Below, in pieces: positions 1,656 to 21,642 of a DNA stretch of 64,000 bases. The DNA comes from Epithemia pelagica (Eukaryota; Protista; Bacillariophyta): the NCBI GenBank assembly GCA_946965045.2, contig OX337239.1, positions 62,001 to 126,000 on the forward strand, read 5' to 3'. The notes under the pieces were generated by a model. That model saw only the letters and a program-made list of their open reading frames with translations, was not told the DNA's origin and made no database searches. The translations under genes and the position numbers were made by a program. Numbering within the stretch: the stretch's first letter is position 1; every line of letters begins with the position of its first letter.

Positions 1656-1919
1656 TGATAAACTGCTAAAAGTTCGCTATCAGAAAGATTATACGTTCAT
1701 TATCGATAAAGCTACCTTGGTTTACAGGTGGGAGTCGTACACAGCTCTCACCGAATTCGGCCACATAGCCGTGGTAGCTCAGACACATTTGTCGTTCATT
1801 GCCAAATATAGGCCACAATTTCAACACTTTCATCCTGTCCGTCACTCCTAGTCTCACTTCGTGATTCGGGCGATGATTGGAGTCACGAACGCGGATCACC
1901 ACACGACGCATACGCATCA
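1656..1919 (-). mobile_element. Putative 5' LTR (~264 bp) of the copia element
   Basis: On the minus strand the segment starts TGAT(G) at 1919 and ends (T)ATCA at 1656 (TG...CA with 4-bp inverted ends), 40 bp upstream of the gag ATG. The matching 3' LTR lies outside the window, so the boundaries are inferred. Confidence 0.6.
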
Positions 1920-2039
1920 AGGAACGGTCGAACCAAAAGATCCATCCTTCGATCGATCGATGGATAGAGAGAGAGACAGATTGAACGAATACTCTAGATC
2001 GACTCCAACTCCAGAAGTGACACCATTATCATTATCAAT

Positions 2040-3609
2040 ATGAGGGTCTTCTTGGTCCCACTGTTTCTTCTTCTTGTGGTGGTGGTTTGGTTGGTGCTCC
2101 TCTCGACCGTCTCGGCCTGGATCTTGCCAGTGGGATCCAATCGACCGTACCACCACCATCGCCACCCACCAACCGTGTCGTCGTCGTCATTCTCCTTGGT
2201 ACCATTCGGTTCCCCTCGTCCCACCACTGCGACGCCTAGGTTCCTTCTCCAAGCCACCACTCAGAATGACCATGACAACGACGACGACCATGACGAGGAC
2301 CCGGACGATGCGGTGTGGAATCCGGACACCATTTTGCAAGTGGCAGCCGCCTTGCCTCAAGACGACAACAAGAACGACTCTGTCATTGTGGTGAAATATG
2401 GAGGCAATGCCATGACATCGCCGTCCTTGAAACAAGCCTTTTGTCACAATGTCGCCGCCTTGCAACGCTTGGGCTTTCGACTCGTGATTGTGCATGGCGG
2501 AGGACCGCAAATCAATCAGTTATTACAGCAACTCAACGTTACCTCCACCTTTTCTCCCACGACCGGCATGCGCATTTCCACTCCCGAAGTCGTCCAAGTG
2601 GCCGAACTGGTGCTGAGTGGCTCGGTCAATAAAGAATTGGTGGCCACGATTGGACAGTATGGCGGACGGGCCATTGGCGTATCGGGACGGGACCATTGGT
2701 TGTTGCAATGCACGGCGCAAGATGAAACCAATTTGGGCTTGGTCGGACACGTGGAGCACGTCAATGCCGAGTGTTTGCACGATTTGCTCAACATTGGTCT
2801 CATTCCCGTCGTGTCTCCCATTGGCACGGGTGTCAAACCCACCAGCAGCACGACACCACATTCCTCCAACAATCAAGAACCCCCCACGGCCTACAATGTC
2901 AATGCCGATGTGGCCGCCGGATGCATTGCCAGTGCCATGCACGCCAAGCAAGTGATTTTTTTGACCGACATTGCCGGAGTCTTGGACGCGGACGGCACGG
3001 TCCTGTCGGAATTGACGTTGCCGCAAGTCCAAACCTTGTTGGATACAAACGTGATTACCGGGGGCATGATTCGTACGTATCACTCTATTCTATTATTTGT
3101 GTGTGTGTTTTGGTGACTGTTGGTTTGGGAGAGAGTTTATTATTGTGTGTGTGTGCGGTTGCTATAGTTTTGTGTCTCCTTGTCGTCCCCTTGTCGATCG
3201 ATTGTGGTGTCGGGACCGTGTCCTTCTCGGTCCTTCTCACACACACACAATCCTCCTACGTGTCGATTGCCGTTTGGTGGTTTGTGGTTGGTACCCATTC
3301 GTCTCACATATGGACTCTCGCGGTCTCTCTCTCTCTTTCTCTTTTTCTTTCTATTTGGTTGTATTGGATTGGATTGGTTGGTTTCAATTCCATCGTGGTT
3401 CCTTCCTTTCCAATGCAGCCAAAATCTCGTATGCCACCACGGCCGTCGAACAAGGCGTAGAATCGGCCGTCATTTTGGATGGTCGCGTCCCCCATGCCTT
3501 GTTGAAACAAGTCGTGTGGTCGTCCTCGTCGTCCAAGAATACGGGAGGAACCGTCATTACCTCGTCGTCCAGCAAAGACAACAACAACAACAACAAGAAT
3601 GAGGAATAG
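2040..3609 (+). CDS. argB: N-acetylglutamate kinase, plastid-targeted; join(2040..3072,3419..3609), 407 aa
   Basis: Motifs VVKYGGNAM, VIVHGGGPQI, GMRIS, GRAIGVSGRD, GLVG, IPVVSPIG, YNVNADVAAG and IFLTDIAGVLD are present. A GTACGT..TGCAG intron (3073-3418) restores GGMIPKI...GVESAVILDGRVPHALL. The hydrophobic signal peptide ends VSA|W (ASAFAP-like). Confidence 0.93.
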
Positions 3610-4082
3610 AAGAAACAACAACAACAAGAACAAATCAATAGAGAGACGACACTCGACACAGTATCCATCTAGTATTGACTGATTGATCGAGAGACGAGGA
3701 AATGAGAGTGGAACCCATCGATCCAACCATGCGGGCCGTCCGTTTGTGGAACAAGTGCCATTGTGGTTCCGTGGAGGAGGGACGACACGACACACAACAG
3801 GACCCTCTCCGCAGTCTCATCCCATCATCCATTGTTGTAGTAGTAATAGTAGTTGTACGAGAGTCGTAGTACGAAACTGCGGCTTGGCCCGTTGTGTCTG
3901 TAGCGTTCTTGTATGGTGCACGACGACAACCACCACCAGCACCACGGTCGAATCGAGTTCTTGGCAAGAGTGGTAACGTGTCTCCATTTTCTCGCTCTCC
4001 GAGCAGGCTCGTGGTTTCTCGCAGCCGCACCTCCATCGGTGGGAGGTGGATGTGGCGTGGTCCTGCGTTGGATGCCTGGGAG

Positions 4083-4266
4083 GGCCCATGCACGGAATTC
4101 TCCTGCGAATGAGATCCTTCTCTCTCTGTGTGGGGCGCCGCGGTCACCATTTCTTCCCTGCTCATGGAACAGGCCATGCACGGAATTCTCCAGCGAATGA
4201 GATCCCTCTCATTCTTTGTGGTGGGGTGCCGTGGTTACCATTCCTTCCTTGCTCACAGAACAGGCC
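4083..4266. repeat. Diverged tandem duplication, ~88-bp unit x2 plus a partial third
   Basis: ggcc(c)atgcacggaattctcc(t/a)gcgaatgagatcc...gctca(t/c)(g/a)gaaca occurs at ~4083 and ~4172, and a third copy starts (ggcca) at ~4262. Confidence 0.8.
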
Positions 4267-4992
4267 ACTGTCCATTCCTTTTGCTGCCAGGACTCTTTTT
4301 CGCTTTCTTCCTCCCAGCCGCACTGTTCTCTACTTCGTATCGACTGCTGCGGTCCGCTCTACAGACAACCTCGTATACAGTCTTTGTTCGGTACCCAAGA
4401 TTCCCAACAATGACTCCATGACAAACAGCTGCAGATCTGATGCAGCATGATGTGTAGCAAGGAGGAGGCAGGAGTCTGGTTTGGACTTTTTGGTGTCATT
4501 GTGTGCCGGAACAAAAAAGTGAAGGAGGATCAAAAAGGTTCACGATTTTGTAAGACTGTTGCAGAATGTTTCGTTGAAAAAGCCTGCGGGCTAGTTCCAT
4601 GTAGAGCTGGAAATAGCAATAATAATAAGATACTCCGTTTGGGTTTGGGGCTAATCTGATGTACTCTGTCTCTGTAGTCTCTAGCTAGAAGAGGGTCCAA
4701 GCAACGGATTTGAAACGACTGGCTCGCGGGCTCTGCAATTTCTGTGCGATAGAAAAAGCGACTGCGCGTACGCATGTGTGGAGACTCTCGGAAGTAGATC
4801 TAAAACTCGGAAGCAAAAGCAAAGGGTGGCTTTGACACGACAGAACAAGATCCACCCTTTAGTTACAAACAGCACACGATTTGTGGGACAGAGGAACAAC
4901 TTGTTATAACAATGAGGGATGAGTTATGCTCATAAAATTGCAAACTCAATCGCAAGAGCAAGCCGAGATCACCACCATCTTCTCCGTTTATC

Positions 4993-5778
4993 ATGTTGAC
5001 TTCCCTACTCGCCGTGTTCTTTTTCGCTGTCGTTGCGCCCATGTCTACCGTCGTTGTTACCGCGGAGATTCAAGGCAATGTCACTTGGGCGGATATCACC
5101 AACAAGGATGAATGTGACGTTTTAAGCGCTACGTGGAGGTCGACCTGTACCACGGAAGGCAACACTCGCCGCCACCTACGTCGCACCGCCGTCCGATCAG
5201 ATGGTGGTGTCCGCGGCACGCGCCGTCGCGATCTTTCGAGCAATGGCATCAAAACGAGAGTCTTGAAGGGCTCGAAGAAGGGCTCGAAGAAGGGCAAGGG
5301 AGGTCTGACCGGAAAACAGGTGGAAGGAACGTTGGAATTTAAGGCGGAGGAAGGAACGTTGGAATTTGCTTTTTTCGAGGGAACCAACTTTTTCGACCCC
5401 ATCAACTGCGGTGTTCCGGCAGATGCCGGTCCCCAGCCTTTGACTGTGGTACAGGATCCGGATGTCGGGGGCTCTGTGGAATTCCTAATGAGCGATAATA
5501 TATCTGCTTCCATTTTGGTGGATATCGATGAAACCAGTATTACCATTCAGGAACCCATTCTCAAAGATCCTTTTGAGGCCAACGACTGGGAGATTATCTT
5601 GGATTTTCAAGATTTAGACAAGGACAAAATTGAGAATGTGATTATTGTTACGGATACATTTGACGGCGGAGTTACGGTCAGTTTCACCGACACGACCATC
5701 ACCATCTTGCCTCCGCCTTTTGGTTTCTCTCTCGACGGTGACGACGAAGTCACCCTTGACGTTGAACTTGGAAAGTAA
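4993..5778 (+). CDS. Secreted protein with RXL sites, a Lys-rich cluster and an acidic beta-rich C-terminal domain
   Basis: 261-aa intronless ORF: signal peptide MLTSLLAVFFFAVVAPMS, then RRHL, RRRDL and RVL|KGSKKGSKKGKGG, followed by a strongly D/E-rich domain. Confidence 0.8.
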   Translation: MLTSLLAVFFFAVVAPMSTVVVTAEIQGNVTWADITNKDECDVLSATWRSTCTTEGNTRRHLRRTAVRSDGGVRGTRRRDLSSNGIKTRVLKGSKKGSKKGKGGLTGKQVEGTLEFKAEEGTLEFAFFEGTNFFDPINCGVPADAGPQPLTVVQDPDVGGSVEFLMSDNISASILVDIDETSITIQEPILKDPFEANDWEIILDFQDLDKDKIENVIIVTDTFDGGVTVSFTDTTITILPPPFGFSLDGDDEVTLDVELGK

Positions 5779-7076
5779 ATCGAGTGAGAATTAAAAAACA
5801 CGTTCGGAGACACGAGGAAGATAAGGAGTGAAAAGCATCTATCGAAAAGAGAGAGAGAAAAAAAGGCCGTAAAAGATAGGTAGATTGATCAAATGAATAA
5901 TACCGGCCATCTGTCATGTGCACAAGAATACAAAACAAGAACCCAATAAATACAGTGTCTGTAGGTTGTACGTTCCGGCTCGTTTCCCGAACCTTTCTCC
6001 GCCTTGTCCTCCGATAATACAGATTGATACAATCGACGTCGATATCGTAGTTTATGGGCCACACCTATCCCATACTGTTCTACAGGAATCTGTACGGTTG
6101 ACAATCCTCCACTGTCGTCAAACGTCTTCACAGCACACATGGTAGGTACGCCAGAGCCCATGGACCTTGAAGGACGGTAACGTAAATCTGTGCGATTGAA
6201 AATCTGTTCCATTGTCACCACTGTCTTGACAACACACACGGTACCCCAGATCCAATCGATACGGACGGTACTAGAAGAGTTTTTCTCCGTATGGACGCGT
6301 GTGACAAGGAGGAGAGGCTCTTGGACCAATGGTTGTGCTCCTGGCATTTGGCAGCGGCGCGTGGATACAATCGAGTAAAATAGGATAGTAGGCCAAAAGG
6401 TGGCACGGTCTGTGTTCCGTTGCGGGCATTCCGGACGACTGTATACCAACCGTCCGTGCGAGTGGGTCGTTGTTTGTGGGTGGAGAGAAGTATCCTTGTT
6501 CCCGTGGAGGAGCGACGACGACACGACACACCAGAACCCATCCTCCTCCTCTCATTTGTCGTCGTCGTAGTTGTTCTTGTTGCTGTTGTTGTACTGTAGA
6601 GTCGTAGTACGAAACCACGGCTGCGTTGCCAGTTGCTGGTCCATGTTGTGTGTGGTCTCCCAGTCTTCTTTTTCTTCTTTGTCTTGTTCTTCACCCACAA
6701 TCGACTACACGTAGCTACTAGCTAGCTGTAGAGGTGGGAGAGAGTGTGCGGTTTCTTTCCGTCTCGGTCCGTCTAGTGATTCGGAAAAACAACACCCAAC
6801 CAACAACACTACTACGGCTCTACAGGCGATTGAACGGAACGGAACGAGTTGTTGTGGCGTGGTGGTGACTCGTGTCTTTCCTTCTCACAGTCTCGGTCGT
6901 TTCTGCAACGACTGGACCGTTTGGGGAGAGAGTGTGTGAGTGACAGAGTGAGAGAGAGGGGCCTTGCGGCTGCGGCTTGCTACTGGTGGCTGCTGCTTTG
7001 GGTTTTTGAAAGCCAGCACTCTTGACAACAACAACAAACAGAATCACAAATTCACACATCTCTGGAACTCATCATC

Positions 7077-10000
7077 ATGTCTTCGATTGATTATTGGCCC
7101 CATCCGACACACTTGGACGATCCCTGGCATGGGCCCTTGTGGACGGCCTACGGCGCCGCCGTCTTGACAATGAGTGTGTATTCCCTCAACAAGCTGCGAC
7201 ACTTGGTCGTTGCCTTGTATGCCATTTTGAGGCGTCTTGCCGTCCGGACGGCAGCCACAACCACAAGAAGTCAAAGTGGACCCCAACGACGACGACAATC
7301 ATGGTCCGACGGCCGTGGAGGAGGGACGGATTCGGCTCGTCCCCCCAAACGACAACCACCACACAAACGACAATAAGGACGACGATTCCTGTTGGTTGCC
7401 CCATGTCACGGTGCAAATTTGTACCTACAATGAAGGCGATGTCATTCGCGAGACCATTGCTGCCGCCAGTCAATTGGACTGGCCCCTGTCGAAATTGACC
7501 ATTCACGTCTTGGACGATTCCACAAATCAGGCGAGCATGGAAATTGTCGAGCACGCCGTCCAGGAATGGCGTCAGTTACGACCCGGTTTGGACTTATGTC
7601 GACGAACCCGACCGACCCTACACGGCTACAAGGCGGGCAATTTGCGGCATCACTGTTCGGCCATTCAAGGTGATTTGGTGGCCTATTTTGATGCCGATCA
7701 TCGTCCCGAAGCCACCTTTTTGCGCGTCACCATTCCCTACTTTTATCATGGCGACGGCACGTTCAATCCCAACATTGGTTTGGTTCAAACGCCCTGGGCC
7801 TATGACAATACCCATTATAGTCTCTTGACCGAAAGTGGTACGTCGAATTGTCGTGGTCGTGTTGGTGTCGTTCGTGTGGTGGTCGGTTGTCGAATCGATT
7901 AGAATATGAGATTCAGTGTGTGTGTGTGTGTACATGTATATGTACGGTTGTGGTGGTGTTTGGCCCGGCTGTATGTGTCGAGAGAAGGATTGTCCAACAA
8001 CCATCAAAACAACGAGCGCGAGACTGCAAGTGTTGTTTAGTTTGGTGCAGTTTGTGGTGGTTTCTCGGCGGCACCACACGGATTGGCGGCCCTCCCTTTT
8101 GTTGTCGTTGTTGTCGTTGTTGTCGTTGTTGTTGTTGTTGTCATTTATTCCTGATTGGATCCGACTCACTCTCTCTCTCTCTCTCTCTCTCTCTCGTTCG
8201 GCATGGTTTACTCACACACTATACTCTGTCCTTTCTGTGGATGGCTCGATCGACACGCACGCACAAACACGCATTTTCTCTCTCTCTCTCTTGTCCTCTC
8301 AATTTCGACTCTTGTTGGTTGATTGGTTCATTGCAATTTGCCAGACGCGCTCTTGTTGGATACGCATCATGTGGTGGAACAAACGGGTCGAGCCTATGCG
8401 CACAAGGTCTTTGGCTTTAATGGAACGGGCGGGGTGTGGAATCGTCACGCCCTCGAGGCGGCGGGAGGATGGACGTGGGATACCGTAACCGAAGACGCGG
8501 CCGTTTCGTATGTGGCCCATTTACACGGCTATGAGTTTGTCTACACGTACCAGCATCCCCAATTGTTGGAAATTCCCAATACCATTACCGCCAATGTCCA
8601 ACAAAAACATCGGTGGACCAAGGGCTTTTTTCAAGTTTTGCGATTGTACTATGGTCCCCAACTTTGGGGCAAGGCCTCGTGGCATGTCCAATTCGAAGCC
8701 TGGATGCACTTGACGGCCGCCCTCCAATCGTGGTGTACCCTCGTGGCCTTGGTCCTGTTTCCCCTCGTCGTCTTGCATGGCATGAACCCGGACCATACAA
8801 CGACCACGTGGATCAAGTACCGGTCCTACTTCTTGACGCTGGAACCAATCGTCACGGCCATTGTGGTCGTGTATACCAAACCGGCCGGGAGCAATGGACA
8901 TTATCAAAGTTTTTGGCAACGCACCCAACGACTGCTGCTCATTGCTCCAGCCTTTTCGTACAAGTGTGGCATGGTCGTCTTTGAAACTCGTGCCGTCCTG
9001 GCGGGATTGGCCTCGAACGATGCCACCTTTTGGACGACGCCCAAAGTGGGAAGCAGCAACAACATCAGTAGTAGCAGTAGTAGTACGACGACATCCACAA
9101 TCAGCCACAGCACCCTCCAGACGACGCACCACAAACTGGAAGATCCCGACCAGACGACGACGGTCCAACGTCCCCGTCGTCGCTTGCCGTCCTTCAATGT
9201 CGTGAATAAGGATTGGACCGACGATTTGTGTTGTGTGATTGGCATTGTCTTGGGACTGGAACGCTTGTGCTTTGTCGTGGGCTTTGATTTGCACTACACC
9301 AGTGATACCTTTGTGCGCTTCTTTCTTCGCTGCGTTAATTTATTCTTGTGGGTCAGTCTCTTGTGGGTCAATACGTGTTTTTGGATTGAAAAACACAAGT
9401 GTTGGTTGTGTCAAAAGCTCTTGTGTGCCACGTCGGCCACCCGCCAAACGGCCAAAAAGACACCCTACGCCTTGTTTTTGTGTTGCAGTCTCGTGACCTT
9501 ATACAAGGGACCCTTGGAATTGCATCACTATGGACTCTTGGAACACTATGGCATGGATGGCTGGAACAGCAACAACTCTTACCACAACAACAACAACGAG
9601 GAAGATACCAGTTGGATTTCGCGCACCGCCTTGCAAGCCGATCAACCCTGGTCCTGTCCACCCCAGGCGCCGCACTCATTGGCCAAACCACGAACGCCTC
9701 TTGTGGTCGTGTCCTTGTCACCATCCATGTCGGCTTTGTCATTGGGGACCGAGGAGGACTCTCTTACCGTCCGCAGTAGCAGCAGCGGCAGCAGAAGTAG
9801 TACGGATTGGGTACTGGGATTCTTGCAAGAACTCAACGAGGAGACCATGACACGCAATCCGCATCATCATCGTCATCATGCCTCTGTACAAATCCAAACC
9901 TTTAGTACTCCCATGTTCCAGGCCGCACCAACCACGGGCAAGTCCACAACCAGAAATGACCAAGCAGAAGACGACCAAGTCTTGTCCGACTGGAAACGGG

Positions 10001-10747
10001 AATTGTGGCATGCCTGCTATTCCAACACGACCAACTCGAGCGGTTTCAACAAGACGATACAAGAGGCACATAGCGAACACGTCGCCCGTCTCCAAGATCT
10101 ATGGGCCCATCGTCAGGAACGACCGTTGGAATGGTTGGACTTTGTTCGTCGCATCCCGTCGACCTATGTTCAACAGTATTTTACAGTCCAAGTGAATCGT
10201 CCCGACTCATTCGAATCTCTTTCAACGAATGATAATACTCTAGTGTCGCTGAACCAATTGATTCAGCACGAGGCACACTTTCCCGGCGCCAAGTACATTT
10301 TTGTGTGGCAACGACGCATGATAGAAACGTATATTGCCACCATGGTGGATGCCACCAAGAATGCAACGATTACCATGGACAAGGACCATTTCGAACAATG
10401 GCTGATCGAGGAACGTGACTATTACCAACGACTCTATTCGGCATTGGAAGAACAACACATTTCCTACCACGCGTTGGAATATGGACGTGACTTCTCCACT
10501 GCCACTGCGATTGACCAAACGGCAGCCCGTTTGGAATCCTTCTTGGGTGTGGAACCCTCCGTGACAACCAACACGACGTCGTCGTCGTCCTCCACCTTTC
10601 GGCGACGGATTAAACAACTTTTACCACCGCATCGTCGTCGTACCCCAGGAATTGCGAGACATGGTGTCCAATTGGGACGCGGTCGTGCAGTGGGGATATG
10701 GAACCACGCGAGATACCGTATGGCCCAATCTATTTCCAAGGACTTGA
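7077..10747 (+). CDS. GT2 processive glycan synthase (CslA/CslC-like) fused to a Stf0-like sulfotransferase; intron 7838..8344; two apparent +1 frameshifts (~7265, ~10630)
   Basis: An N-terminal TM helix (LWTAYGAAVLTMSVYSLNKL) lies in the 7077 frame. The catalytic part has VTVQICTYNE, VLDDS, GYKAGNL, YFDAD, VQTPW, FNGTGGVW, TVTED and QKHRWTKG (D,D,D,QxxRW). A GTACGT..CCAG intron joins TES|DALLL. After several TM helices the same frame continues into RSSTDWVLGFL...KYIFVWQRR..ETYIA...ITMDKDHFEQWL...LEYGRDF...LESFLGV...IKQ, with the closing PQELRDMVSNWDAV in the +1 frame (stop 10745-10747). Confidence 0.8.
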
Positions 10748-11018
10748 ATGTGCTGCCTAGTTGCTTCATGGTATCTTTTGTTTGTGTTCGCTTCCAACAA
10801 GAAAGTCATAGCATTTGGTATTCTGTTCGTCTCGTGAGATCGGCCAGCGATCATTGTCTTTCATGGGGCGGGCGTGCTCGCAGCGTGGTACGACCCACTC
10901 AGATCGGGTTTTTATGCGAAGATGAAAGAATTGGACCGTCTCTCGTCTCCTCGATGAGGACCACACGAGAAAATCTGTCTCCCTTGCCAGCAGTTCTATC
11001 AACAGAACATAATTTAAA

Positions 11019-12194
11019 ATGAACTGTTGGGAGGAAGGGCGTCTGTCTGGACTTGTGTTGGGAGAAAGTCATATCGGACAACCACCCCAATGGACGAAGG
11101 AGAAAGAAGAAGGATGGCCTCGAGATGTGAAATTACCACATGGACACGCATTGGTGGTGGTGTATCAAACCGACCGAAATCCCAAGGAGGAAATCGTGGC
11201 CTTAGTGGGAGGCGAAACCGATGACAACAAACGTACTTCTGTGTTTCTGCTAACAGGTATGGCGGATGGGCGACAAGAAGGAAGGAATTGGCAAGAAGGA
11301 CCACCAATGAATCAAGGGAGGATCTTTCTATCCGCTATCGTTTGTAATGGCTTCGTCTATGCGATTGGAGGACTCGATGACAACCGATCATATTTGGACA
11401 CTGTGGAACGGATTAGGCTGGTGGAATTGATATCTTCCTCCTCCACAAGTACCAAGAGCTCTTTTCGGGAAAATGGTAACAACTACGAGAAAGTGTGGGA
11501 GACATTGAAATATCGTTTGACGGATCCGAGACGCGATTGCTGTGCTGTGGTGGTTCACAATAGGTACATTCTTGTTGCTGGTGGACTATCTTGGTACTCT
11601 TCTCTGTCGTCGGTAGACATTATTGATACAGCCACAAGTAAACAAGGAACAAGCGATCCTTGTTGCATATTTCCGGGCCCACGCTTGACGGGTCCTCGTA
11701 CAGACTGTGCAATGGAAGTCCTTGGCCAGCGTGTATATGTCGTTTGTGGTTATGGTTACAATGTCGAGTATCTGGATTTGAACGACTCTGGCAAAGGTAC
11801 AGACAATAAGAGCACGTACTCGTCCTTGTTTTGGTCCGGTTTGTCATGGACGAAACACAAAGAATTGAAACTCTTTGACTGTCGTTGGTGCCATGCAGTG
11901 GTACGAGTTGGATCATGCCTAGTCGGGACAATTTTTTGTGGTACTAATGATACCTGTAATACTGAAAATATTGTGATTTTGGATACCAAACGCAAAAATG
12001 TCTGGACCCTTCCACACCGAATGTCTTGTTACATATCCGTGCACATCGGGGTTACCCATTCCAATGGAATTGTTGCCATGGGTTTCGCGACAAAGGCTTC
12101 TTCTTGCTACGAACTTACCTTTTACAAGGAAAGACTGCCATTGATGGACAAGAACTCTGCTCTCTTTTTGCGGCTGTTGGAAAAGCCGCATTAG
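11019..12194 (+). CDS. Kelch-repeat beta-propeller protein (family A, copy 1)
   Basis: 391 aa. Motifs: EEGRLSGLVLG, VALVGG, WQEGPPMNQGR..LSAIVCNGFVYAIGG, YILVAGG, GPRL..PR...MEVLGQRVYVV and H.VVRVGSCLV. Confidence 0.9.
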   Translation: MNCWEEGRLSGLVLGESHIGQPPQWTKEKEEGWPRDVKLPHGHALVVVYQTDRNPKEEIVALVGGETDDNKRTSVFLLTGMADGRQEGRNWQEGPPMNQGRIFLSAIVCNGFVYAIGGLDDNRSYLDTVERIRLVELISSSSTSTKSSFRENGNNYEKVWETLKYRLTDPRRDCCAVVVHNRYILVAGGLSWYSSLSSVDIIDTATSKQGTSDPCCIFPGPRLTGPRTDCAMEVLGQRVYVVCGYGYNVEYLDLNDSGKGTDNKSTYSSLFWSGLSWTKHKELKLFDCRWCHAVVRVGSCLVGTIFCGTNDTCNTENIVILDTKRKNVWTLPHRMSCYISVHIGVTHSNGIVAMGFATKASSCYELTFYKERLPLMDKNSALFLRLLEKPH

Positions 12195-13506
12195 GTGGAA
12201 ACTAGAAAGCAAGTCTAGCTATTTGTTCGTATCCTGCGGCTGTTGGAAACGCCGCATTTGGTGGGAAGCAATCAAGTCGACTATGAGATATAGCTGCCTT
12301 GTGTGTGTGTCATTGCGTGTTTATAGAGTAGATTTGTTGTATGGATTGACGGGTTACACCAAACGCAACTCTGTTATCGACAAAAAAGTGCACGATTAGG
12401 TTTGTGTTGGACCGTTGTTGCAATGGCCCGTGTGGTCAATGGTACGGTACTGGAACTCAAAGAAAGAGAGCGTGGTCTCATGAGGAAAGTCTTTCTTGGT
12501 CACCAGACAAAACCAAAACAGAAAAGATCGATAGATGTTCTTGGGGATCACCCACTACGCTTGCACCGTTCACAAACTGGTGAGAAATCCTGGCTCTTGT
12601 GTATTGCAGTTTGGTCTTGTTGCTTGTTATTTTTGTTCTCCGTCCGGAAAGTATCCAGAACACCCGCAATCGCCACCCTCACCCATGTTTGTTCGAACTA
12701 TATTTACTTCAGTATATTGGCTTCCCAACCCTCGTCGGATTGTTCTGTATCGTCATTTTGGACTTGCTATTCCATGTTCCCGTGCCTTTTTCTTACATGG
12801 ATCCCTAACACCGCCGCGCTCATTCTCGTTGTTACACGATCTCCATGGACCTTCCAATGGGTAGACGCTCCTTGTTCACAACTTGGTCTTGGTCCTGCTT
12901 CCCATGAATGCGATCGGTGGAGGGAACTTCTCCTACCGCCAGATTACTGTTGTTACAGTCAGAGAATCGAGAGTGGAGTAGCATCCAGCTTGGACGAGTC
13001 GAATGATGACGGCCTATGGTACACCATATTATGAGGCGGGAGCAAGAGGAGAGCTTCCCATGAATCAGCACCTTGCTGGTTGTATCCATTCTTGTGGTCG
13101 TCGTCAAGGCGGAAGGACGATCTATGATTTCCACACGTTTCTTAGGAGTCGATATTGTTCCAGTGCTTGTCACGTTGGTCATTCCTTACTCCTATGAATC
13201 TTTCGTGCTCAACAGATAGAACGTCGAGTGTCGAGTCCCACTTGTACTTGAACAATGACTTCTTGTTTCGACCAAAGTTAGAAACGTATTGGACGTCTGG
13301 GTTTAGATGGCATGTGGACGTCCTACGGGTTTTCATCCTTCATGCGATCTATCTGCGTCTCATGGACCTTGCTTTACACAAAAATCCCATTTCGTCCATC
13401 GCGATGGCCGCGTTCTCCTGTTCACTTTGCGTTGTGGAGTGAGCGACAGAATCGGACCGAGGACGCTCTCGTACTTGTCATTTCTACCAACAGAACATAT
13501 TTCACA

Positions 13507-14751
13507 ATGAACTGTTGGGAGGAAGCGCGTCTGTCGGGACTTGTGTTGGGAGAAAGTCATATCGGACAACCACCCCTATGGATATGGAAAAAGGAGAAAG
13601 AAGAGGGATTGCCTCGAGATGTGGTTAACCAAATACCACATGGACACGCAATGGTGGTGGTGTATCCAACCGACCGAAATCCCAAGGAGGAAATAGTGGT
13701 CTTAGTGGGAGGCGGAACCGATTACAACAAACGTAATTCTGTGCTTCTTCTAAAAGATATAGAGGATGAACGACGTGCAACGCATTGGCAAGAAGGACCA
13801 CCATTGAATCAAGGGAGGATCTTTCTATCCGCTGTCGTTTGTAATGGCCACGTTTACGCAATTGGAGGACATGGTGACATCACTTCTTCCGTGGACACTG
13901 TGGAACGGATTGGTCTAGAGGACTTGCTTTCTTCCTCCTCGACAAGTTCCAAGAGTACTTTTCGGGACAATGGTGACATCCAAAAGACAAAGTGGGAGAC
14001 ATTAAAATGTCGTTTGTCGTCTCCGAGGCTTGATTCTTCGACTGTGGTGGTTCACAACAGGTACATTCTCGTCGTTGGGGGAAAAAGTCGGCTCGGTGAT
14101 GCTAGTCTTTTGTCGGTTGACATTATTGATACAGCCACAAGTGAACAAGGGTCGACCGATCCTTGTTGCATATTCTCGGGCCCACCCTTGACAGTTCCTC
14201 GTACAAGGTTTGGAATGGAAGTCGTTGAAGGGCGTGTGTATGTCGTTGGTGGTTGCTATTCGCACAGTTCCCATATTTGCGACTCGGTCGAGTATCTCGA
14301 TTTATCCGATTCTGGCCACGGTGTAGACAACAAGATTACATTGTCCTCCAAGGTTTGGTCCGGTTTGTCCTGGACGAAACACAAAGAATTGAAACTCTTT
14401 GACTGTCGTTCGGATCATGCAATCGTCCGAGTTGGATCATGCCTTGTCGTTTCCGGAGGGACAATTTATCGTGGTAATGGCTGTGTCAAGGGGGCTGGGA
14501 CCATTGAGATTTTGGATACCAAACGCAACAAGGTCTGGAAGCTTCCCCTCCGAACGCCTTGTTGCGGATTCAGGCACAGCCTGGTTACCCGTTCCAATGG
14601 GATTGTTGCCATGGGTTTCGTGGCAAAGGGTTCTTCTCGGAACGAATTCACATTTTACAAGGAAAGGCTGCCATTGACAGACAAGAAGTCTTCTCTCTTT
14701 TTGCGGCTTTTGGAAAAGCCGAATTTGGTGGAAACTAGCAAGCAAGTCTAG
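13507..14751 (+). CDS. Kelch-repeat beta-propeller protein (family A, copy 2)
   Basis: ATG at 13507 (MNCWEEARLSGLVLG) aligns with the copy 1 start, and the Kelch motifs match throughout. Confidence 0.9.
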   Translation: MNCWEEARLSGLVLGESHIGQPPLWIWKKEKEEGLPRDVVNQIPHGHAMVVVYPTDRNPKEEIVVLVGGGTDYNKRNSVLLLKDIEDERRATHWQEGPPLNQGRIFLSAVVCNGHVYAIGGHGDITSSVDTVERIGLEDLLSSSSTSSKSTFRDNGDIQKTKWETLKCRLSSPRLDSSTVVVHNRYILVVGGKSRLGDASLLSVDIIDTATSEQGSTDPCCIFSGPPLTVPRTRFGMEVVEGRVYVVGGCYSHSSHICDSVEYLDLSDSGHGVDNKITLSSKVWSGLSWTKHKELKLFDCRSDHAIVRVGSCLVVSGGTIYRGNGCVKGAGTIEILDTKRNKVWKLPLRTPCCGFRHSLVTRSNGIVAMGFVAKGSSRNEFTFYKERLPLTDKKSSLFLRLLEKPNLVETSKQV

Positions 14752-16419
14752 TTACATGTTCTTTTTCTCAGTCCGGAATGTATATTGAGCACTACCCGCA
14801 ATCGCCACCCGCCGCACCCATGTTGGTTGCCCCATCTGCCGAGATGCAACCGTGTTGATCGAACTACTATAGACACTTGGTTAGATTGGCGTCCCAACCC
14901 TCGTCGGATTGTTCTGCTTCGTCTTGTTTGGGGACTGGATGCTGATGATTCATGGTCCTGTGCCATGTCCCTCCATGAATGCCACCACCGCGCGCTGTGT
15001 ATAGTAGTAGTATAGGATCGTGTCACAGTCTCGTTCCTGCACCATCACCCAGGAACGCCCCAAAGTACTCTGTACACGACACTTCTTGTTCCCAAAACTT
15101 GGTCTTGTTCCTGCTTTTGAGTGGTAAAACCGTGTCTCCCACGCAAGAAGAATACTGTTGTGTAGTAGAGTTTGTAGTGAGAGAGAATCGAGAGAGAGAG
15201 AGAGAGTGGAGCATGACATTTGGACGACGCGACGAGGTTTGGATGCGACGACTGTGCGCGCGAGCGCACAACAAGCGGAGACCGACCCATGAACCAGCAC
15301 ACTGATGCCTGGTGGTCTCAATTCTTGTCGTCATCGTCGTCGCCGCCAAGACGGAAGAACGATTCACTTGCGGTGTTTGTTGACCAGTCCTAGGAGTCGT
15401 TCGTGCTTCCGCTCCTTACGTGTTTGTTGTATGGTCCATGGTCCACTCTTCTCGTGCTGCCATCGATGGTGGTGGGCATTCGGAAGAAAAAAAATGGAAC
15501 GCGTCTGGAAAGACACGGGGTATTCCTTATGCTTATGCCCCTTTTCTTGGCCAGTGAATGAGAGCACGAGTACAATCGGCAATCGGGCGTCACACGCAAC
15601 AAGCCAATAACAAAGATGGAACAAGGGGCACAGATCGAATTTTGCCGGCCATACTTTAGTCCAATATTTCAAAGTGTATATCTTAATTTGGCGAGGCATA
15701 TATTGAACCAATCGAAAGAGCATTCAAAGACGAGTTGATCTATGTAACGAACTCAAATTGGGACCCCTCTGAAATATCCGTGCCCACAATGGAAACAGTC
15801 TTACATACACAACACCCCAAAAAGTCTCTTTTTTGGCTGAATCGGCGCCAATATTGTGATTGTTGTTGTGACGGAGCGTGTGAGAACGAGAGATTGAACG
15901 TTGCGCTCAACTCCCAACAAAAGAGAAGAGAAGAAAAGAAAAGAAGTGCGGTGTCGGACCACCAAAAGAGGCCAGTGTTCAAGAGTCCTTTTGTTTTCTT
16001 ACAGGGGCGGCTCGTCGTTGTCGTTTCGTCTCGTGCCACAAAACAACAACACCCACAGTGGTTCGCAAGTACCAACGGATTCCTGGACCAACAAAAAGGA
16101 AAGAGTCCTAGCAGTAGTACTCGATTGAAGAGCTGGCTGTGGAGACAGCCTTGTTGCAAACTTGTGGTGGTGGTGGTAGGTAGTAAGGGTGGAAAATAAG
16201 AGGAATCGTTTGAGTGTTGGTTGTTCCGGATCGAACGGAAGGCCACACTGGCATTTCGCACCGACTGTGGAGTTGTTGTTTGGTTCCATGACTCGTTTCT
16301 TACATTGACGTTCTATACTGCTTTGTTCATGGTTGCGTTTGTTGTGATGAAGAGACCAAACTTGTTGAACGAAGCAACACCAGTGGCACTAGTGTGTGAT
16401 TCTTCCAGTCCAGAGACCA

Positions 16420-18402
16420 ATGACCATGAGTTTCTTGGGATCCTCTCGAACGAGCGAATCACTGTTGGGGGATTCCAGTCCGGACCTTGTGAACGAGTCG
16501 TCGTCGTGGAGGAGGACCCTGTGGCGGAGCCTGGCCGAGGACACACCGACAACAATTACGGACAGTGACGACGACGAGGCCGACGAACCCAACACGGTGG
16601 GCACGGCCTTGTCCTACATCTTTTTATTCTTTTTAATTTTTGGTCTGAGTGCCACGGTGGAAATCAAAAATCTCCAGAAACAATTGCAAAACAAGTTTGC
16701 CATTGCCACGGGTGTGGCCATGCAGTTTGTGATCATGCCCATTTTGGGATTTCTCGCCGTCCTGACGCTGGACCGTCAAGAAGGATGGACGCAAGAAATG
16801 GGCGTCGCACTCCTTGTTGTTACCTCCTCTCCCGGCGGCAGTTACTCGAATTGGTGGTGCAGTTTGTTCAATGCCGATTTGGCCCTGTCCGTGGCCATGA
16901 CGACCGTCTCCAGTTTGTTGAGCATGGCCATGCTGCCCCTCAACTTGTTTCTCTACACCTTTTTGGCCTATGGTCGCAGTGAAGAAGAGTCGGTCGTTCA
17001 AGCCTTGGACTTTGGCACCATTTTCTTGGCCCTGGGCATTGTGCTGGTGGCCATTTTGTCGGGTCTCTGGGCCGGATACCGCAACGATACCCGAGCCTTT
17101 CATGTCATGGCCAATCGATTGGGCAGTCTGTCGGGACTCTTGCTCGTCTTGTTTTCCGTCTTTCTTAGCAGCGGCGCCGACGGCGCCGAAAACAATTTTT
17201 GGAATCAAGATTGGGCCTTTTATGTCGGTGTGGCCTTTCCCTGTTTGGTTGGCATTGCCTTGGCCAATGTGATTGCCCGGAGTTTGCGCTTGGCGCCGCC
17301 GGAAACCGTGGCCATTTCCATTGAATGCTGTTACCAAAATACCGGCATTGCCACGTCCGTGGCCATTGCCATGTACGACGACAAGGAAGAACGAGCCCAA
17401 GCCGTGGCCGTTCCCCTCTTTTATGGTGTCGTGGAAGCCGTGGCCATTGCCATTTATTGTGTCTGGGCCTGGAAGGTCGGATGGACCAAGGCACCGCGGG
17501 ATGAAAAACTCTGTGTCGTACTGGCCAATACCTATGAAGGCATGGAACCAGAGGACAATGACGACCAAGCGGCCGTGGCGGCGGCGAATGGAGACGAAGC
17601 AATGGAGGAGTACAATGATCCTTCCATGGCCTCGACACGATTCCAGGATGATGCCGTACATCTTGGGTTGAGTAATCGGACCAACATTGCCGAACAGGAT
17701 GAGATTCCCGAAAAAGCCGGAACCAGCAGAGTGTCGTTTTGGAGACGATTGTGGGGTGGTCGAACCCATTGTAATGAGACAAACAAACAGGAAACCAACA
17801 AGGCTCCCTTTCGCAACGATGTGGCGCTGGCCGAGGCCATGGGGACGATTCCCGCGTCTTCGCTGGCCGCCGTAGAACAACAAGACGAGGCAGCGGCACT
17901 GGGGGCGTCGTCGTCACCGTCCAAGGCTTGTAGTACTACCAGCAAGGCAGCACATTCTCCGGCCCGCCTTCGGACGCTCACCATGGAAACCAGTGCCAGT
18001 AGTTCGGCCAGTTCGGATCGAGGAGGACCGCAAACTCCCGTGCCACGACGCGACGAAACGAGTCCATCCTCCACAACCACAACCACAACCACAACCACAA
18101 CCCCACCACCTGCCACGACAACAACAACGGATGTGTCCTGGGCACATTTGAACATGCCCAACGACGACCACCATCATCAGTCTCCTGCTGGTGTACTAGC
18201 GCAAGCTGCCACACTGGCATCCTCCATGGAACACTCCAATTTGTCTCCCGCCTACCAACCGCAGGAATCATCGCCATCATCATCGCCAGTACCATTGCCA
18301 GTCATGTCCACATCGTACGACGAGGATCAATTGGAGGGAGTCGAGGTATCCAACTTTGTAACACCGGCTTCCACCATGGATGAGCAAGATGACCATGTCT
18401 AA
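16420..18402 (+). CDS. Bile acid:Na+ symporter (BASS/SLC10) family transporter with a long disordered C-terminal tail
   Basis: Multiple TM helices, with IFGLSATV, GVAMQFVIMP, SPGGSYSNWW..LFNADLALSVAMTT.S and ECCYQNTGIA. The first ATG is at 16420. Confidence 0.88.
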   Translation: MTMSFLGSSRTSESLLGDSSPDLVNESSSWRRTLWRSLAEDTPTTITDSDDDEADEPNTVGTALSYIFLFFLIFGLSATVEIKNLQKQLQNKFAIATGVAMQFVIMPILGFLAVLTLDRQEGWTQEMGVALLVVTSSPGGSYSNWWCSLFNADLALSVAMTTVSSLLSMAMLPLNLFLYTFLAYGRSEEESVVQALDFGTIFLALGIVLVAILSGLWAGYRNDTRAFHVMANRLGSLSGLLLVLFSVFLSSGADGAENNFWNQDWAFYVGVAFPCLVGIALANVIARSLRLAPPETVAISIECCYQNTGIATSVAIAMYDDKEERAQAVAVPLFYGVVEAVAIAIYCVWAWKVGWTKAPRDEKLCVVLANTYEGMEPEDNDDQAAVAAANGDEAMEEYNDPSMASTRFQDDAVHLGLSNRTNIAEQDEIPEKAGTSRVSFWRRLWGGRTHCNETNKQETNKAPFRNDVALAEAMGTIPASSLAAVEQQDEAAALGASSSPSKACSTTSKAAHSPARLRTLTMETSASSSASSDRGGPQTPVPRRDETSPSSTTTTTTTTTTPPPATTTTTDVSWAHLNMPNDDHHHQSPAGVLAQAATLASSMEHSNLSPAYQPQESSPSSSPVPLPVMSTSYDEDQLEGVEVSNFVTPASTMDEQDDHV

Positions 18403-19166
18403 TACAACGAAACGGAATGGAGCTTGTTTCGTTGTTGGACCAACACGACGCACTCTCTTTTGTTGGCAGATGAAACACAAACCAATCACTCTGGGGCCGG
18501 AAATCGACCCATGCCGAAACGTCCATGGGATGGGTATATATACATGCTTGTAGAAATTATAGATTTGTGGTGTGTAGTACACAAGAGCAGCTCTCGAGTG
18601 TTTGACACCCGCAGCATGTGTGTGTGGTTGCGGGGTCCATCAATTCAACTCTGTTTTAGAAACACCAAACTACCGACACACTTGTGCTACCATTTCTTCA
18701 TGGTTTGGTCTCACATTGTATTATTCTTCTACTCGGTCGCCGCGGATGAAACATGGGTTCTCGACTTGTTACACTTCTTTTATCATGGATGTTCTCTGTA
18801 CTACGTTTTGTTCCGAACCGCAAGATTCGATTTGTCCTTTCCATATGTTGTACTAGTGGCACTTGGAACGAACAAGTACCGTATAGATCCATGACTTCCT
18901 CTTCTCAAAACGACTCTACAAGCAAGCAGTGTTTGTTTTTTCTTATACAACGATTCGTATTAAAGTGTGTTTCTACGATGGCAGTTTCGGGTGTCACTGT
19001 CATCTTCCCGTCAGGAGTGGTAGGTAGCAGAAGCGTCGGTGTTTCGTTTGGGAACCAACACCACAGATGCTGGCCCACCCAACGACCCCCTTCCGACGCT
19101 GGCCCAACGACGGACGACCACCATCATCTGTGGACCATCCTCTTCATCATATGGTTTCTGGATTCG

Positions 19167-19658
19167 TTAGGCCTTGGAAAATCCCAATCCATTTTCTTCT
19201 CCATATCGTTCCATGAATCGCATGAATCGATCCCAGGCATCGGGGGAGGTCATGACATAGACGGCGGTAATACTTTGCGGTTTGCCATTGGTAAAGCGGG
19301 CATTCACGTCCGTCGTGGACAATTCGCCTTCTTCGTCTTCCAAAAACATGCCGGTAATTTCCCCTTGCGTTTGTGTCGAGGCATCAAACACATTGGGGTT
19401 GTCAAAGGTAAAGGTGGCCACACCGGAACTGCCATCGCGCGCCCGTGTCAATTTCACGTCGGGAATCACTTTTTCATCCAAACCACGCACAAATTGAATC
19501 GAAGCCGACAAGGCCATGGACGACCCTGGTCTGCTGCTGGAAGAATCGGTACTGGTTCTCGACGATTGGATGGTGGTTGTCGTTGAACGGGGGGCAAAAG
19601 CATGGACCGACCATGCCGAAATCAACCAGAACACAAGAGAGGAAGCAAAGGATTTCAT
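19167..19658 (-). CDS. psb28: Photosystem II assembly factor Psb28, nuclear-encoded with a bipartite presequence (163 aa)
   Basis: Mature part reads [31 protein letters not shown]...[12 protein letters not shown]...TDVNARF.NGKP...[12 protein letters not shown]. The signal peptide [20 protein letters not shown]|FAP is followed by a Ser/Thr-rich transit peptide. Confidence 0.95.
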
Positions 19659-20424
19659 GATGCAAAACGTTTCGTGTAGTGTTTGGTTGTGTGATGCTTG
19701 ATACGACAAGACAGTTTATGAACACAACAACGGAAAGAGAGGATGATGGTGGGATCCAAACTTAGTTGTTGGACGTGGCCTTTACGAGAGCAGTAGCAGG
19801 AATGAGTCAAAAGTGGACGGTGGCGGTGCAACAGTCAACACCCAATCGAACGGCAGATGGTTGTGTCGATTGCAAACTACAAACTACTGGCAGTCAGCAG
19901 AATGAATGATTAGCACAAAAATGATTGTTGTTGTGAAACCACCTTCGTCGTCCACACGACGTTTGCCATGCCATGTCATCGTGAACGATACGGGCAGACT
20001 CATTCCAGAAGTACGTGGCCATATGAAGACGCATCGTGGTCGCGTTTATAGAGGACACATAGTCTACCTCTCTGGAGTAGGAGTAGGTAGGAGTAGCTAT
20101 CTTAGCAAGGAGTATCTACCTGCCTCTACTAGGTAGTCCTACATAGCCATCACTCCTATCTGTCATTCTTTGACGTATATACTCCTAACACTCTAGCTAG
20201 CCTTACTCCTCTAGAATAATACAAGTCAATTCATCTACTCCTGTAACCCTGTACATGTCATATCAATCATAGAATCCCAAGTGTGTTAGTCTAGGACAGA
20301 TTCGTAATGTCTTTACGAAAACATCAAATCTCATGATATTCTCATGCATTCATTCTATGATGATTCGTGCAGATAGACAAACTCTGTCCTCCAACGAGGT
20401 CTCATGTGAGGGTAGAATAGACAA

Positions 20425-21642
20425 CTAGACTCGAGTGGTTTCCACCAAAGCAGGCTGTTCCAACAGGCGCCGAAACAGAACCGAGTGGTGGCCCATGAGT
20501 GGCAATGTTTCGCACCACATACTATTGCCGACACGCCCTCCAATATACACAATTCCAGCACGCCCTCCAATATACACAATTCCATTGGAAAGTGCAATGA
20601 TCCTGTGATTGTAATCCAAAAAACGCGAAGGGTGAGGAAGGTTCCAGACCTTGTTGCGTTTGACATCCAAAATCTCAATGATCCCAGGAAAATGACCAGC
20701 TTTCAAAAATGTCCCTCCGGAAACGACTAGGCATGATCCAACTCGGACTGTTGCATGATCCCAACGATACTCAGAGAGTTTCAAATGTTTGTGTTTGGTC
20801 CATGACAAACCGGACCAAAACTTGAAGGAGGATGTATTCTTCTTGTCTGTTGTACTTGGGTCGAAATCGTTCAAATCCAGATACTCGACCGAGTAGAGTC
20901 TGAAACCACCAACGACATAGACACGCTGGCCAATGATTTCCATTCCAAAGCTTTCACGAGGAACCGTCAAGGGTGAGCCCGAAAATATGCAACAAGGTTG
21001 TTCGCTTGCTTCGTCTGTACTTGTGGCTGTATCAATAATGTCAACCGACGACATTGTATAATTCAACCGACCTAGTCCACCAGCGACAAGAATGTACCTA
21101 TTGCGAACCACCACAGCTGAACAGTTGCGTCTCGGAGTCGACAAACGGCATTTCAATGTCTCCCACTTTTTCTCTGGCGTGTCACCATTGTCGCGAAACG
21201 TACTTTTGGTACTTGCGGAAGAAATCAAGTTCAGCAGACCAATCCGTTCCACAGTGTCTAAAAAGGAGTCGAAATACGAGTCCGTGAGTCCTCCAATCGC
21301 ATAAACGTGGCCATTACAAACGACTGCGGATAGAGAGTCCCTCCCTTGATTCAATGGTGCTCCTTCTTGCCAATGCCTGCCTTGTCGTCCATCCCCCATG
21401 CGCTTAAGAAGAAGAAGCACAGAAGTAAGTCTCTTGTCGTTGTCTCGTCCTCCCACTAAGACCACTATTTCCTCCTTGCTAGGATTATGGTTGCCTGGAT
21501 ACACCACCACCAATGCGTTTCCAATTGGTAATTTCACATCTCGAGGCCATTCTTCTTTCTCCGTATGACTCCATTGGGGTGTTCCGCTCGAAATTCCCCC
21601 CAACACAAGTCCAGACAGACGCGCTTCCTCCAAATAGTTCAT
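20425..21642 (-). CDS. Kelch-repeat beta-propeller protein (family A, copy 3)
   Basis: The start MNYLEEARLSGLVLG is at 21642 and the full Kelch motif set is present. A 27-bp in-frame duplication near the C-terminus gives GIVYIGGRA-GIVYIGGRV. Confidence 0.9.
   Translation of the reverse strand: MNYLEEARLSGLVLGGISSGTPQWSHTEKEEWPRDVKLPIGNALVVVYPGNHNPSKEEIVVLVGGRDNDKRLTSVLLLLKRMGDGRQGRHWQEGAPLNQGRDSLSAVVCNGHVYAIGGLTDSYFDSFLDTVERIGLLNLISSASTKSTFRDNGDTPEKKWETLKCRLSTPRRNCSAVVVRNRYILVAGGLGRLNYTMSSVDIIDTATSTDEASEQPCCIFSGSPLTVPRESFGMEIIGQRVYVVGGFRLYSVEYLDLNDFDPSTTDKKNTSSFKFWSGLSWTKHKHLKLSEYRWDHATVRVGSCLVVSGGTFLKAGHFPGIIEILDVKRNKVWNLPHPSRFLDYNHRIIALSNGIVYIGGRAGIVYIGGRVGNSMWCETLPLMGHHSVLFRRLLEQPALVETTRV

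Follow-up and report, generated by a model that had tools for sequence, protein, structure and literature searches.

The genome of the diatom Epithemia pelagica contains, within a stretch of 64,000 nucleotides (NCBI GenBank assembly GCA_946965045.2, contig OX337239.1, positions 62,001 to 126,000 of the forward strand; the whole stretch is hereafter called the window), a gene at positions 7077-10747 in which a polysaccharide synthase of glycosyltransferase family 2 (GT2) is joined to a domain of predicted sulfotransferase (ST) fold. The fusion of a GT2 synthase with this domain is conserved in a small clade from diatoms and marine protists, and its architecture is real and apparently undescribed. 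The copy in the window appears degenerate and is most likely, if by no means certainly, a young pseudogene or null allele within the conserved GT2-ST clade. Sulfated polysaccharides of diatoms are important in cell walls, in adhesion, and in the storage of carbon in the sea, and to our knowledge neither the synthases nor the sulfotransferases that produce them have been identified.

The N-terminal part of the protein is confirmed as a BcsA/Csl-like processive membrane GT2 polysaccharide synthase, with a membrane channel predicted from the sequence. Exon 1 (7255-7837, + strand, frame B) encodes an acidic linker and the N-terminal half of the catalytic domain, with the motifs TYNE (7423-7434), LDDS (7513-7521), DAD (7690-7698), and QTPW (7786-7797). 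The C-terminal half of the catalytic domain and the membrane channel region follow in exon 2 (8345-9504, + strand), which carries FGFNGTGG (8410-8433), TED (8488-8496), QQKHRW (8599-8616), and the gating-loop motif FWTTPK (9028-9045); hydropathy places membrane helices at 8704-8982 and three more past FWTTPK (9226-9282, 9313-9369, and 9463-9504). Profiles matching above their cut-offs are PF00535 (5.3e-12) and PF13641 (6.2e-9) from Pfam, together with PF13632 (3.1e-12) in exon 2, as well as CelA (9.5e-27) and PgaC (1.2e-11) from NCBIfam; among solved structures in the Protein Data Bank (PDB) the nearest are the BcsA cellulose synthases (4e-7). An earlier note on this DNA, written from the letters alone, had proposed a complete D,D,D,QxxRW core with membrane helices that continues into a C-terminal domain without a stop, and both proposals hold: all of the motifs are present, and exon 2 lies within a single open reading frame (ORF) of 899 codons (8323-11022). 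The signature of D, DxD, TED, and QxxRW is shared with BcsA (PDB 4HG6/4P00, 7LBY), CesA, CslA, and CslC, as are an FxxTxK-like gating motif and membrane helices on either side of the catalytic domain. Unlike these enzymes, the window protein has a single N-terminal helix and neither PilZ nor zinc-finger domains; its QQxRW and FGFNGTGGVW motifs are closer to CslA/C than to CesA. A C-terminal domain of sulfotransferase fold is found in none of BcsA, CesA, CslA, and CslC.

The region that follows the synthase (9688-10644, + strand, main frame) belongs to a domain family of diatoms and marine protists, about 320 residues in length and defined by 23 relatives from an exhaustive HMMER search. The landmarks of the family are, in order, PR[ST]GSN directly after strand 1, a Glu or Asp within ..YELF, IPS, and LWRRRxxExFVSxxIA, and then FEYDRDL, KQAxVPL, and NWxxVxxWGY...W.DLF. 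Counterparts in the window are the first strand TPLVVVS (9694-9714), a putative loop SRSSTDW (9790-9810), WQRRMIETYIAT (10306-10341), LEYGRD (10474-10491), and FLGV (10540-10551). A hidden Markov model (HMM) of the family, built without the window sequence, matches the main frame at 1.8e-36 over HMM positions 96-281 only (the equivalents of 10051-10578) and finds the tail, HMM positions 294-322, in the +1 frame (E 4e-12). Comparison of the window domain with the fused relatives by phmmer gave 4e-15 for P0034, 4e-11 for P0026, and 1e-9 for P0031. Of the landmarks listed in the earlier note, YIFVWQRR..YIA, LEY.RD, FLGV, and NW..V are present and agree with the family HMM; KQ and L.D.V.NW..V had been read as one series and in fact lie in different frames.

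By its modelled structures the family has a sulfotransferase fold, nearer to Sulfotransfer_3/NodH than specifically to Stf0, so that the Stf0-like identity first proposed for the domain survives as to fold and needs correction as to subfamily. The AlphaFold model of the domain of one relative (P0031, residues 630-964) has a predicted local distance difference test score (pLDDT) of 85.8; its top 10 Foldseek matches in the PDB are all sulfotransferases (E 6e-4; Stf0 at probability 1.0), and so are its top 50 by VIA-align (Z 10.2-11.7). Sequence profiles recover the relationship in part: Sulfotransfer_3 (PF13469) matches 10 of the 35 domain instances (best 7.6e-6, with P0005 alone reaching the cut-off), the Stf0 profile matches two of the 35, and one family member bears the JGI name 'LPS sulfotransferase NodH'. 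The window domain itself has no sulfotransferase match in Pfam, NCBIfam, or PDB sequence searches, and its assignment follows from its fold and its relatives rather than from sequence matches of its own. Its AlphaFold2 model (pLDDT 73, with low confidence at residues 14-34) has sulfotransferases in first rank by VIA-align (Z about 10) and reaches template modelling (TM) scores of 0.5-0.62 against sulfotransferase clusters in a shape search of the ESM Atlas, and in a search with language-model features clusters of Stf0 and Sulfotransfer_3 came up (score 0.92), which serves as a lead only. Foldseek on the same model places adenylate kinases first, weakly (E 0.016 and worse), and this, with the want of a sulfotransferase profile match to the window sequence, is what would speak for a C-terminal domain unrelated to sulfotransferases, such as another P-loop kinase-like domain of the nucleotide or sugar kinase type. 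That identification is very improbable, in view of the uniformly sulfotransferase matches of the well-modelled relative, the VIA-align ranking of the window model, the Sulfotransfer_3 matches within the family, and the R[ST]GS loop and RR..E.FVS helix of the family, which are typical of binding of 3'-phosphoadenosine-5'-phosphosulfate (PAPS), with no Walker A motif GxxxxGK[ST]. Searches of PDB sequences with the family profile returned archaeal methyltransferases only, judged to be a chance match of the WGY tail. When the ST region of P0031 was used as query in a word-based search for homologues, P0031 alone was recovered, and a search for paralogues within the window found none.

The same domain occurs at the C-terminus of GT2 homologues with canonical motifs (P0031, 964 residues; P0034 and P0047, 888 and 915 residues) and of P0026 (1468 residues), which has an added protein kinase. 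P0041, a complete ORF of a transcript from MMETSP, is 100% identical to P0026 over all of P0026, and GT2 and ST-fold domain therefore share one messenger RNA in a relative. Two further homologues seem to be GT2 only (P0024/P0051 and P0025), but the ORF that comes next on their strand encodes the domain; in one of these loci (L002) an intron of the form GTGAGT...CGCAG separates the GT2 ORF from the domain ORF. In a maximum-likelihood tree of GT2 sequences the window gene forms a clade with P0026, P0031, P0034, P0047, P0024, and P0025 (support 98/96), and the domain is carried by all seven members of the clade, following the third helix after the gating loop in an order that is identical in the window. 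The survey of other proteins called for at the outset thus came out in favor of a genuine fusion, in 7 of 7 clade members and in the single transcript of P0041. Gene calls in the databases searched are made at the level of ORFs, and the 'stand-alone' members P0014, P0004, and P0012 are therefore probably pieces of fusions; many of the apparently stand-alone family members are likely to be such fragments.

Some additional arrangements of these domains were observed. P0026 and P0041 present a triple fusion of protein kinase, GT2 synthase, and sulfotransferase domain in one ORF with all of the GT2 motifs. ORF calls in public collections split the GT2-ST fusion at introns (L002, 2308-2471; L003, 2306-2316). 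The domain also occurs as tandem arrays within single proteins, with five copies in P0002 (Fistulifera solaris GAX14134.1), three in P0003, and two each in P0005 and P0020, one of the copies in P0020 being degenerate, with an HSGA loop and a long branch.

Placement of the ST-fold domain relative to the membrane follows from the helices behind the gating loop. The FxVTxK gating loop of BcsA lies in the cytosol, and the polypeptide, after crossing the membrane in two further helices, ends up there again. The fused proteins have three hydrophobic helices after FxxTPK, the last of which is preceded by basic and followed by acidic residues; by the positive-inside rule the domain is therefore predicted to lie across the membrane from the GT2 active site, in the lumen, as had originally been supposed. 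Five N-x-S/T sequons in the window domain agree with this luminal placement. Such a position would imply an endomembrane location supplied with imported PAPS. CesA likewise has three helices after the gating loop, and its C-terminus is expected outside the cytosol.

For the intact relatives a mechanism can be proposed in which a nucleotide sugar would be polymerized at the cytosolic GT2 site into a beta-linked glycan, the glycan would pass through the protein's own membrane channel, the three further helices would put the ST domain on the luminal (Golgi-type) side, and this domain would sulfate the emerging chain with imported PAPS. A protein that both polymerizes and sulfates, as proposed for the window gene in the earlier note, is thus plausible for the intact relatives and unlikely for the window gene, in which the frame is broken twice and residues of the PAPS site are lost. 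The larger proposition, that the whole clade, including the window gene with its frames corrected at the RNA level, constitutes a one-polypeptide machine that polymerizes a beta-glycan in the cytosol, threads it through its own channel, and sulfates it in the Golgi lumen as it is made, must be considered improbable. If it were true, it would offer a direct genetic handle on the production of sulfated extracellular polysaccharides by diatoms. As candidates for diatom glycan sulfation, P0031, P0041, and P0047, which are intact, come into question, and not the window copy.

The window domain appears degenerate in the parts that would bind PAPS. The family HMM leaves the N-terminal third unaligned, including the region of the loop for the PAPS 5'-phosphosulfate (PSB loop), and begins only at position 96; the identification of RSSTDW..FL as a P-loop has no statistical support. 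In the relatives PR[ST]GSN lies six residues past strand 1, and the window has an insertion of 24-28 residues, with pLDDT below 50, between strand 1 and the putative loop. The RSGS of the relatives reads RSST in the window, and an ungapped alignment gives PSMS instead, with no Arg. In PAPS-dependent sulfotransferases a conserved Lys or Arg of the PSB loop directly follows strand 1, and the Ser of the 3'-phosphate-binding (PB) helix is conserved and defining (PMC11625862). The PB helix of the family, WRRRxxExFVS, has become WQRRMIETYIA, in which the 3'-phosphate-binding Ser is replaced by Ala, followed by a deletion of 10 residues. A further change turns YELF into TPMF: the Glu or Asp found about 25-30 residues past the loop in all other members that have the region is Pro in the window. 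The catalytic base of PAPS-dependent sulfotransferases is a His or a Glu. The invariant residues R209, E213, E264, Y265, and D268 are retained. In the tree of the ST domain the terminal branch of the window sequence, at 3.72 substitutions per site, is seven times as long as the median branch (0.5), and the corresponding GT2 branch measures 0.93 against a median of 0.61. The window gene is probably not an active sulfating enzyme, to judge from these sequence changes and from its two broken reading frames, and at best it would be a GT2 synthase dragging along a catalytically dead sulfotransferase-like domain.

The window domain is open over 319 codons despite its divergence, and it must therefore have been translated while most of this divergence took place. 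At 3.7 substitutions per site so long a frame would not have stayed open under neutral decay, which speaks for a reading in which the GT2 synthase is functional and the ST-like domain serves as a non-catalytic luminal module, a pseudoenzyme with a possible role in binding of the glycan or of a partner, or in regulation of the synthase; the frame changes would then be errors or very recent. The pattern of conservation would also suit such a module, with the C-terminal two-thirds clearly homologous to the family (1.8e-36) and the PAPS-binding elements gone. It is nonetheless a rather unlikely explanation, since neither the tail nor the N-terminal helix shares a frame with the part next to it, the main frame of the domain and the GT2 core respectively, and the gene is deleted in a sister copy (see below).

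Two frame changes set the window copy apart from a simple fusion, and 7077-10747 cannot be read as the single frame once envisaged for it: the GT2 core is offset by +1 from the N-terminal helix, and the tail is +1 to the main frame. The gene is eukaryotic, on the + strand, with a start ATG at 7077 and a tail stop TGA at 10745-10747, as established from the ORF listing and by direct reading. The start codon and N-terminal membrane helix (LWTAYGAAVLTMSVYSLNKLRHLVVALYAIL, at 7137-7229) lie in frame A (7077-7245, + strand), in which codon-usage log-odds are positive up to about 7240, and the helix aligns with the N-termini of P0031 (SIYAINRWKHLIVSLYLSYL) and P0024 (WFYSLSRWKNLVTAVWLYY). Coding does not run uninterrupted from this helix through the catalytic domain, as frames A and B are offset by +1. 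The 5' zone of change from frame A to frame B, delimited by ORFs and codon usage, extends over 7231-7376 (+ strand): frame A meets a stop at 7374-7376, frame B is open from 7231, and codon usage switches near 7240-7255. All GT/GC..AG pairs were listed as possible introns; at the 5' break every pair that would repair the frame either has poor signals or cuts into the conserved helix. The 3' zone (10585-10646, + strand), in which family homology and codon usage pass from the main frame to +1, offers as candidate points of the switch a (TCG)n/TCC tract near 10590 and a run of four C in ACCCCAG (10642-10648). Codon usage changes frame near 10590-10600, and family homology resumes only in the +1 frame, in the conserved C-terminal tail of the domain (QELRDMVSNWDAVVQWGYGTTRDTVWPNLFPRT; 10646-10747, + strand), identified by the family HMM and by translation. 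This out-of-frame tail is still well conserved, which makes the frame breaks recent, provided that they are real. A partial copy of the promoter and the exon of the N-terminal helix (6664-7303) lies elsewhere in the genome, as loose contig ends in all three public runs that hold the locus show, and this copy diverges just past 7303, inside the 5' zone. Frameshifting by +1 at stops, of the kind found in Euplotes, was considered as a cause and rejected, the 3' site being without a stop in the main frame.

The frame changes might alternatively be assembly errors or small introns in a gene that is intact and active, with variant motifs that still sulfate the nascent glycan, namely the Arg in SRSST and, where the PB Ser would stand, a Thr or Ala. 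The length of the open frame, the completeness of the GT2 motifs, the persistence of a family motif in the tail beyond the 3' frame change, the retention of the five invariant residues, and five N-x-S/T sequons in the ST-like region, such as would be expected of a luminal domain, are all favorable to this explanation, and a candidate GT..AG intron of 88 nucleotides (10561-10648) would restore the 3' frame. The same intron, however, would delete the conserved KQ/RRR segment (KQAxVPL in relatives), and the 5' break is without any acceptable intron. No insertion or deletion occurs at either site in the contigs of the three public runs, and the second copy of the locus shares the window sequence at the 3' zone; contigs and second copy alike bear out the window sequence at the two sites. 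Moreover, the P-loop third goes unrecognized by the family profile, the PB Ser and the conserved acidic residue are lost, and the branch of the domain is seven times the median. An intact and active gene is on this evidence unlikely.

Several observations count against regarding the window copy as a young pseudogene or null allele, or against parts of the argument. The three agreeing runs may be the very source data of the assembly, and both frame changes fall in low-complexity linkers, where small unrecognized introns or consensus errors are possible. The PB serine is also absent from the family members P0006 and P0019, and its loss alone is no proof of inactivity. The 899-codon frame and the retention of all GT2 motifs imply that any inactivation is recent or that the GT2 part is still used. 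Finally, the membrane topology is based on hydropathy and on analogy with BcsA/CesA.

A syntenic second copy of the locus (L001; ENA ERZ21939226, contig ctg1358l) is without the equivalent of window positions 3928-9967, i.e., the entire GT2 part, and keeps a remnant of the domain (P0001) that is 93% identical to the window's and has the same frame-shifted tail. Variants of this copy at 10323, 10472, and 10494 occur in the contigs of the runs, which shows that the same samples contain it as well. A count by eye of the changes that separate window and L001 gave about 13 non-synonymous and about 10 synonymous ones, too few for the ratio of their rates (dN/dS) to be decisive. Taken together, the locus shows an order of decay of the fusion in which divergence of the ST half came first and the frame breaks next, with deletion of the gene from the sister copy. 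In a scenario of this kind the ST-like domain of the window copy would have diverged far beyond its GT2 partner while still translated, losing the PB-helix serine, the conserved acidic residue, and a recognizable P-loop, and two +1 frame changes would then have arisen that split the helix from the GT2 core and cut off the tail. The pattern of decay suggests that the ST module is dispensable in this organism.

Alignment of window positions 1827-19397 with L001 positions 7967-20871 gives flanks that are 87-92% identical, with an extra 1.46 kb in L001 at window position 10737/10741. The tract 10100-10737 is 98-99% identical to L001, and an identity so much higher than that of the flanks points to gene conversion or to recent copying.

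Each of the constituents of the fusion has counterparts among known systems. The Stf0 trehalose 2-sulfotransferase (PDB 1TEX) and NodH share the fold of the domain, with Z 11.3 for the model of the relative and 9.2 for that of the window. The relatives have Arg rather than Lys in the PSB loop, as does Stf0 (PMC11625862), and also the RR...S PB helix. Sequence similarity to these enzymes is below the Pfam thresholds, and the family differs from them in extra helices and in the NW..WGY..W.DLF tail; the window copy differs further in having no PB Ser, no canonical loop, and no conserved acidic residue. Stf0 and NodH are soluble stand-alone enzymes, unlike the fused domain. NDST, whose sulfotransferase domain is a structural match of the window model at Z 8.2, is a Golgi membrane protein whose single chain carries a luminal PAPS sulfotransferase domain besides a domain that modifies glycans; in contrast to the fusion, it neither polymerizes a chain nor passes one through the membrane, and both of its domains are luminal. 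Also comparable are database clusters that combine GT2 with Sulfotransfer_3 in bacteria (Bacteroidota) and Gly_transf_sug (PF04488) with a sulfotransferase in chlorophytes, the latter being the best shape match of the window model (TM 0.62). The glycosyltransferases of these bacterial and chlorophyte fusions are soluble and non-processive and have no translocation channel, and as far as the searches go both are known only as unannotated database clusters. GAX14134.1 (FisN_8Hh027), from the annotated genome of the diatom Fistulifera solaris, belongs to the same domain family (E 1.3e-34 to the window domain) and differs in that a GT2 part is absent and the domain is repeated in tandem five times. 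Targeted searches of the open-access and preprint literature yielded no account of a processive GT2 synthase joined to a sulfotransferase domain, in agreement with the statement in the earlier note that its author knew of none, and in a review of polysaccharide sulfotransferases from 2024 the words 'fusion' and 'diatom' do not occur.

The two exons of the window gene are separated by an intron of 507 nucleotides read from the sequence (7838-8344, + strand, phase 1, GTACGT...TTGCCAG), and the splice joint reads LLTES|DALLLDTHHVVEQ, the counterpart of which in P0031 is LLTECDAASLDYHHVVEQ. Contigs of the three public runs cover the intron and behave like DNA, and a query confined to RNA libraries listed no run. 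The intron contains CT, GT, and GTT microsatellites (7906-7946 and 8095-8301), at which the contigs of all runs break. The neighbors of the synthase in the window include no adjoining gene for sulfate activation or PAPS transport. Upstream are a gene of the amino-acid kinase family (2040-3116; PF00696, 1.6e-37) and an ORF of unknown function (4993-5778). Downstream a family of Kelch-repeat genes, also found in L001, begins at 11019, 270 bases past the end of the gene, and its copies within the window are about 75-78% identical.

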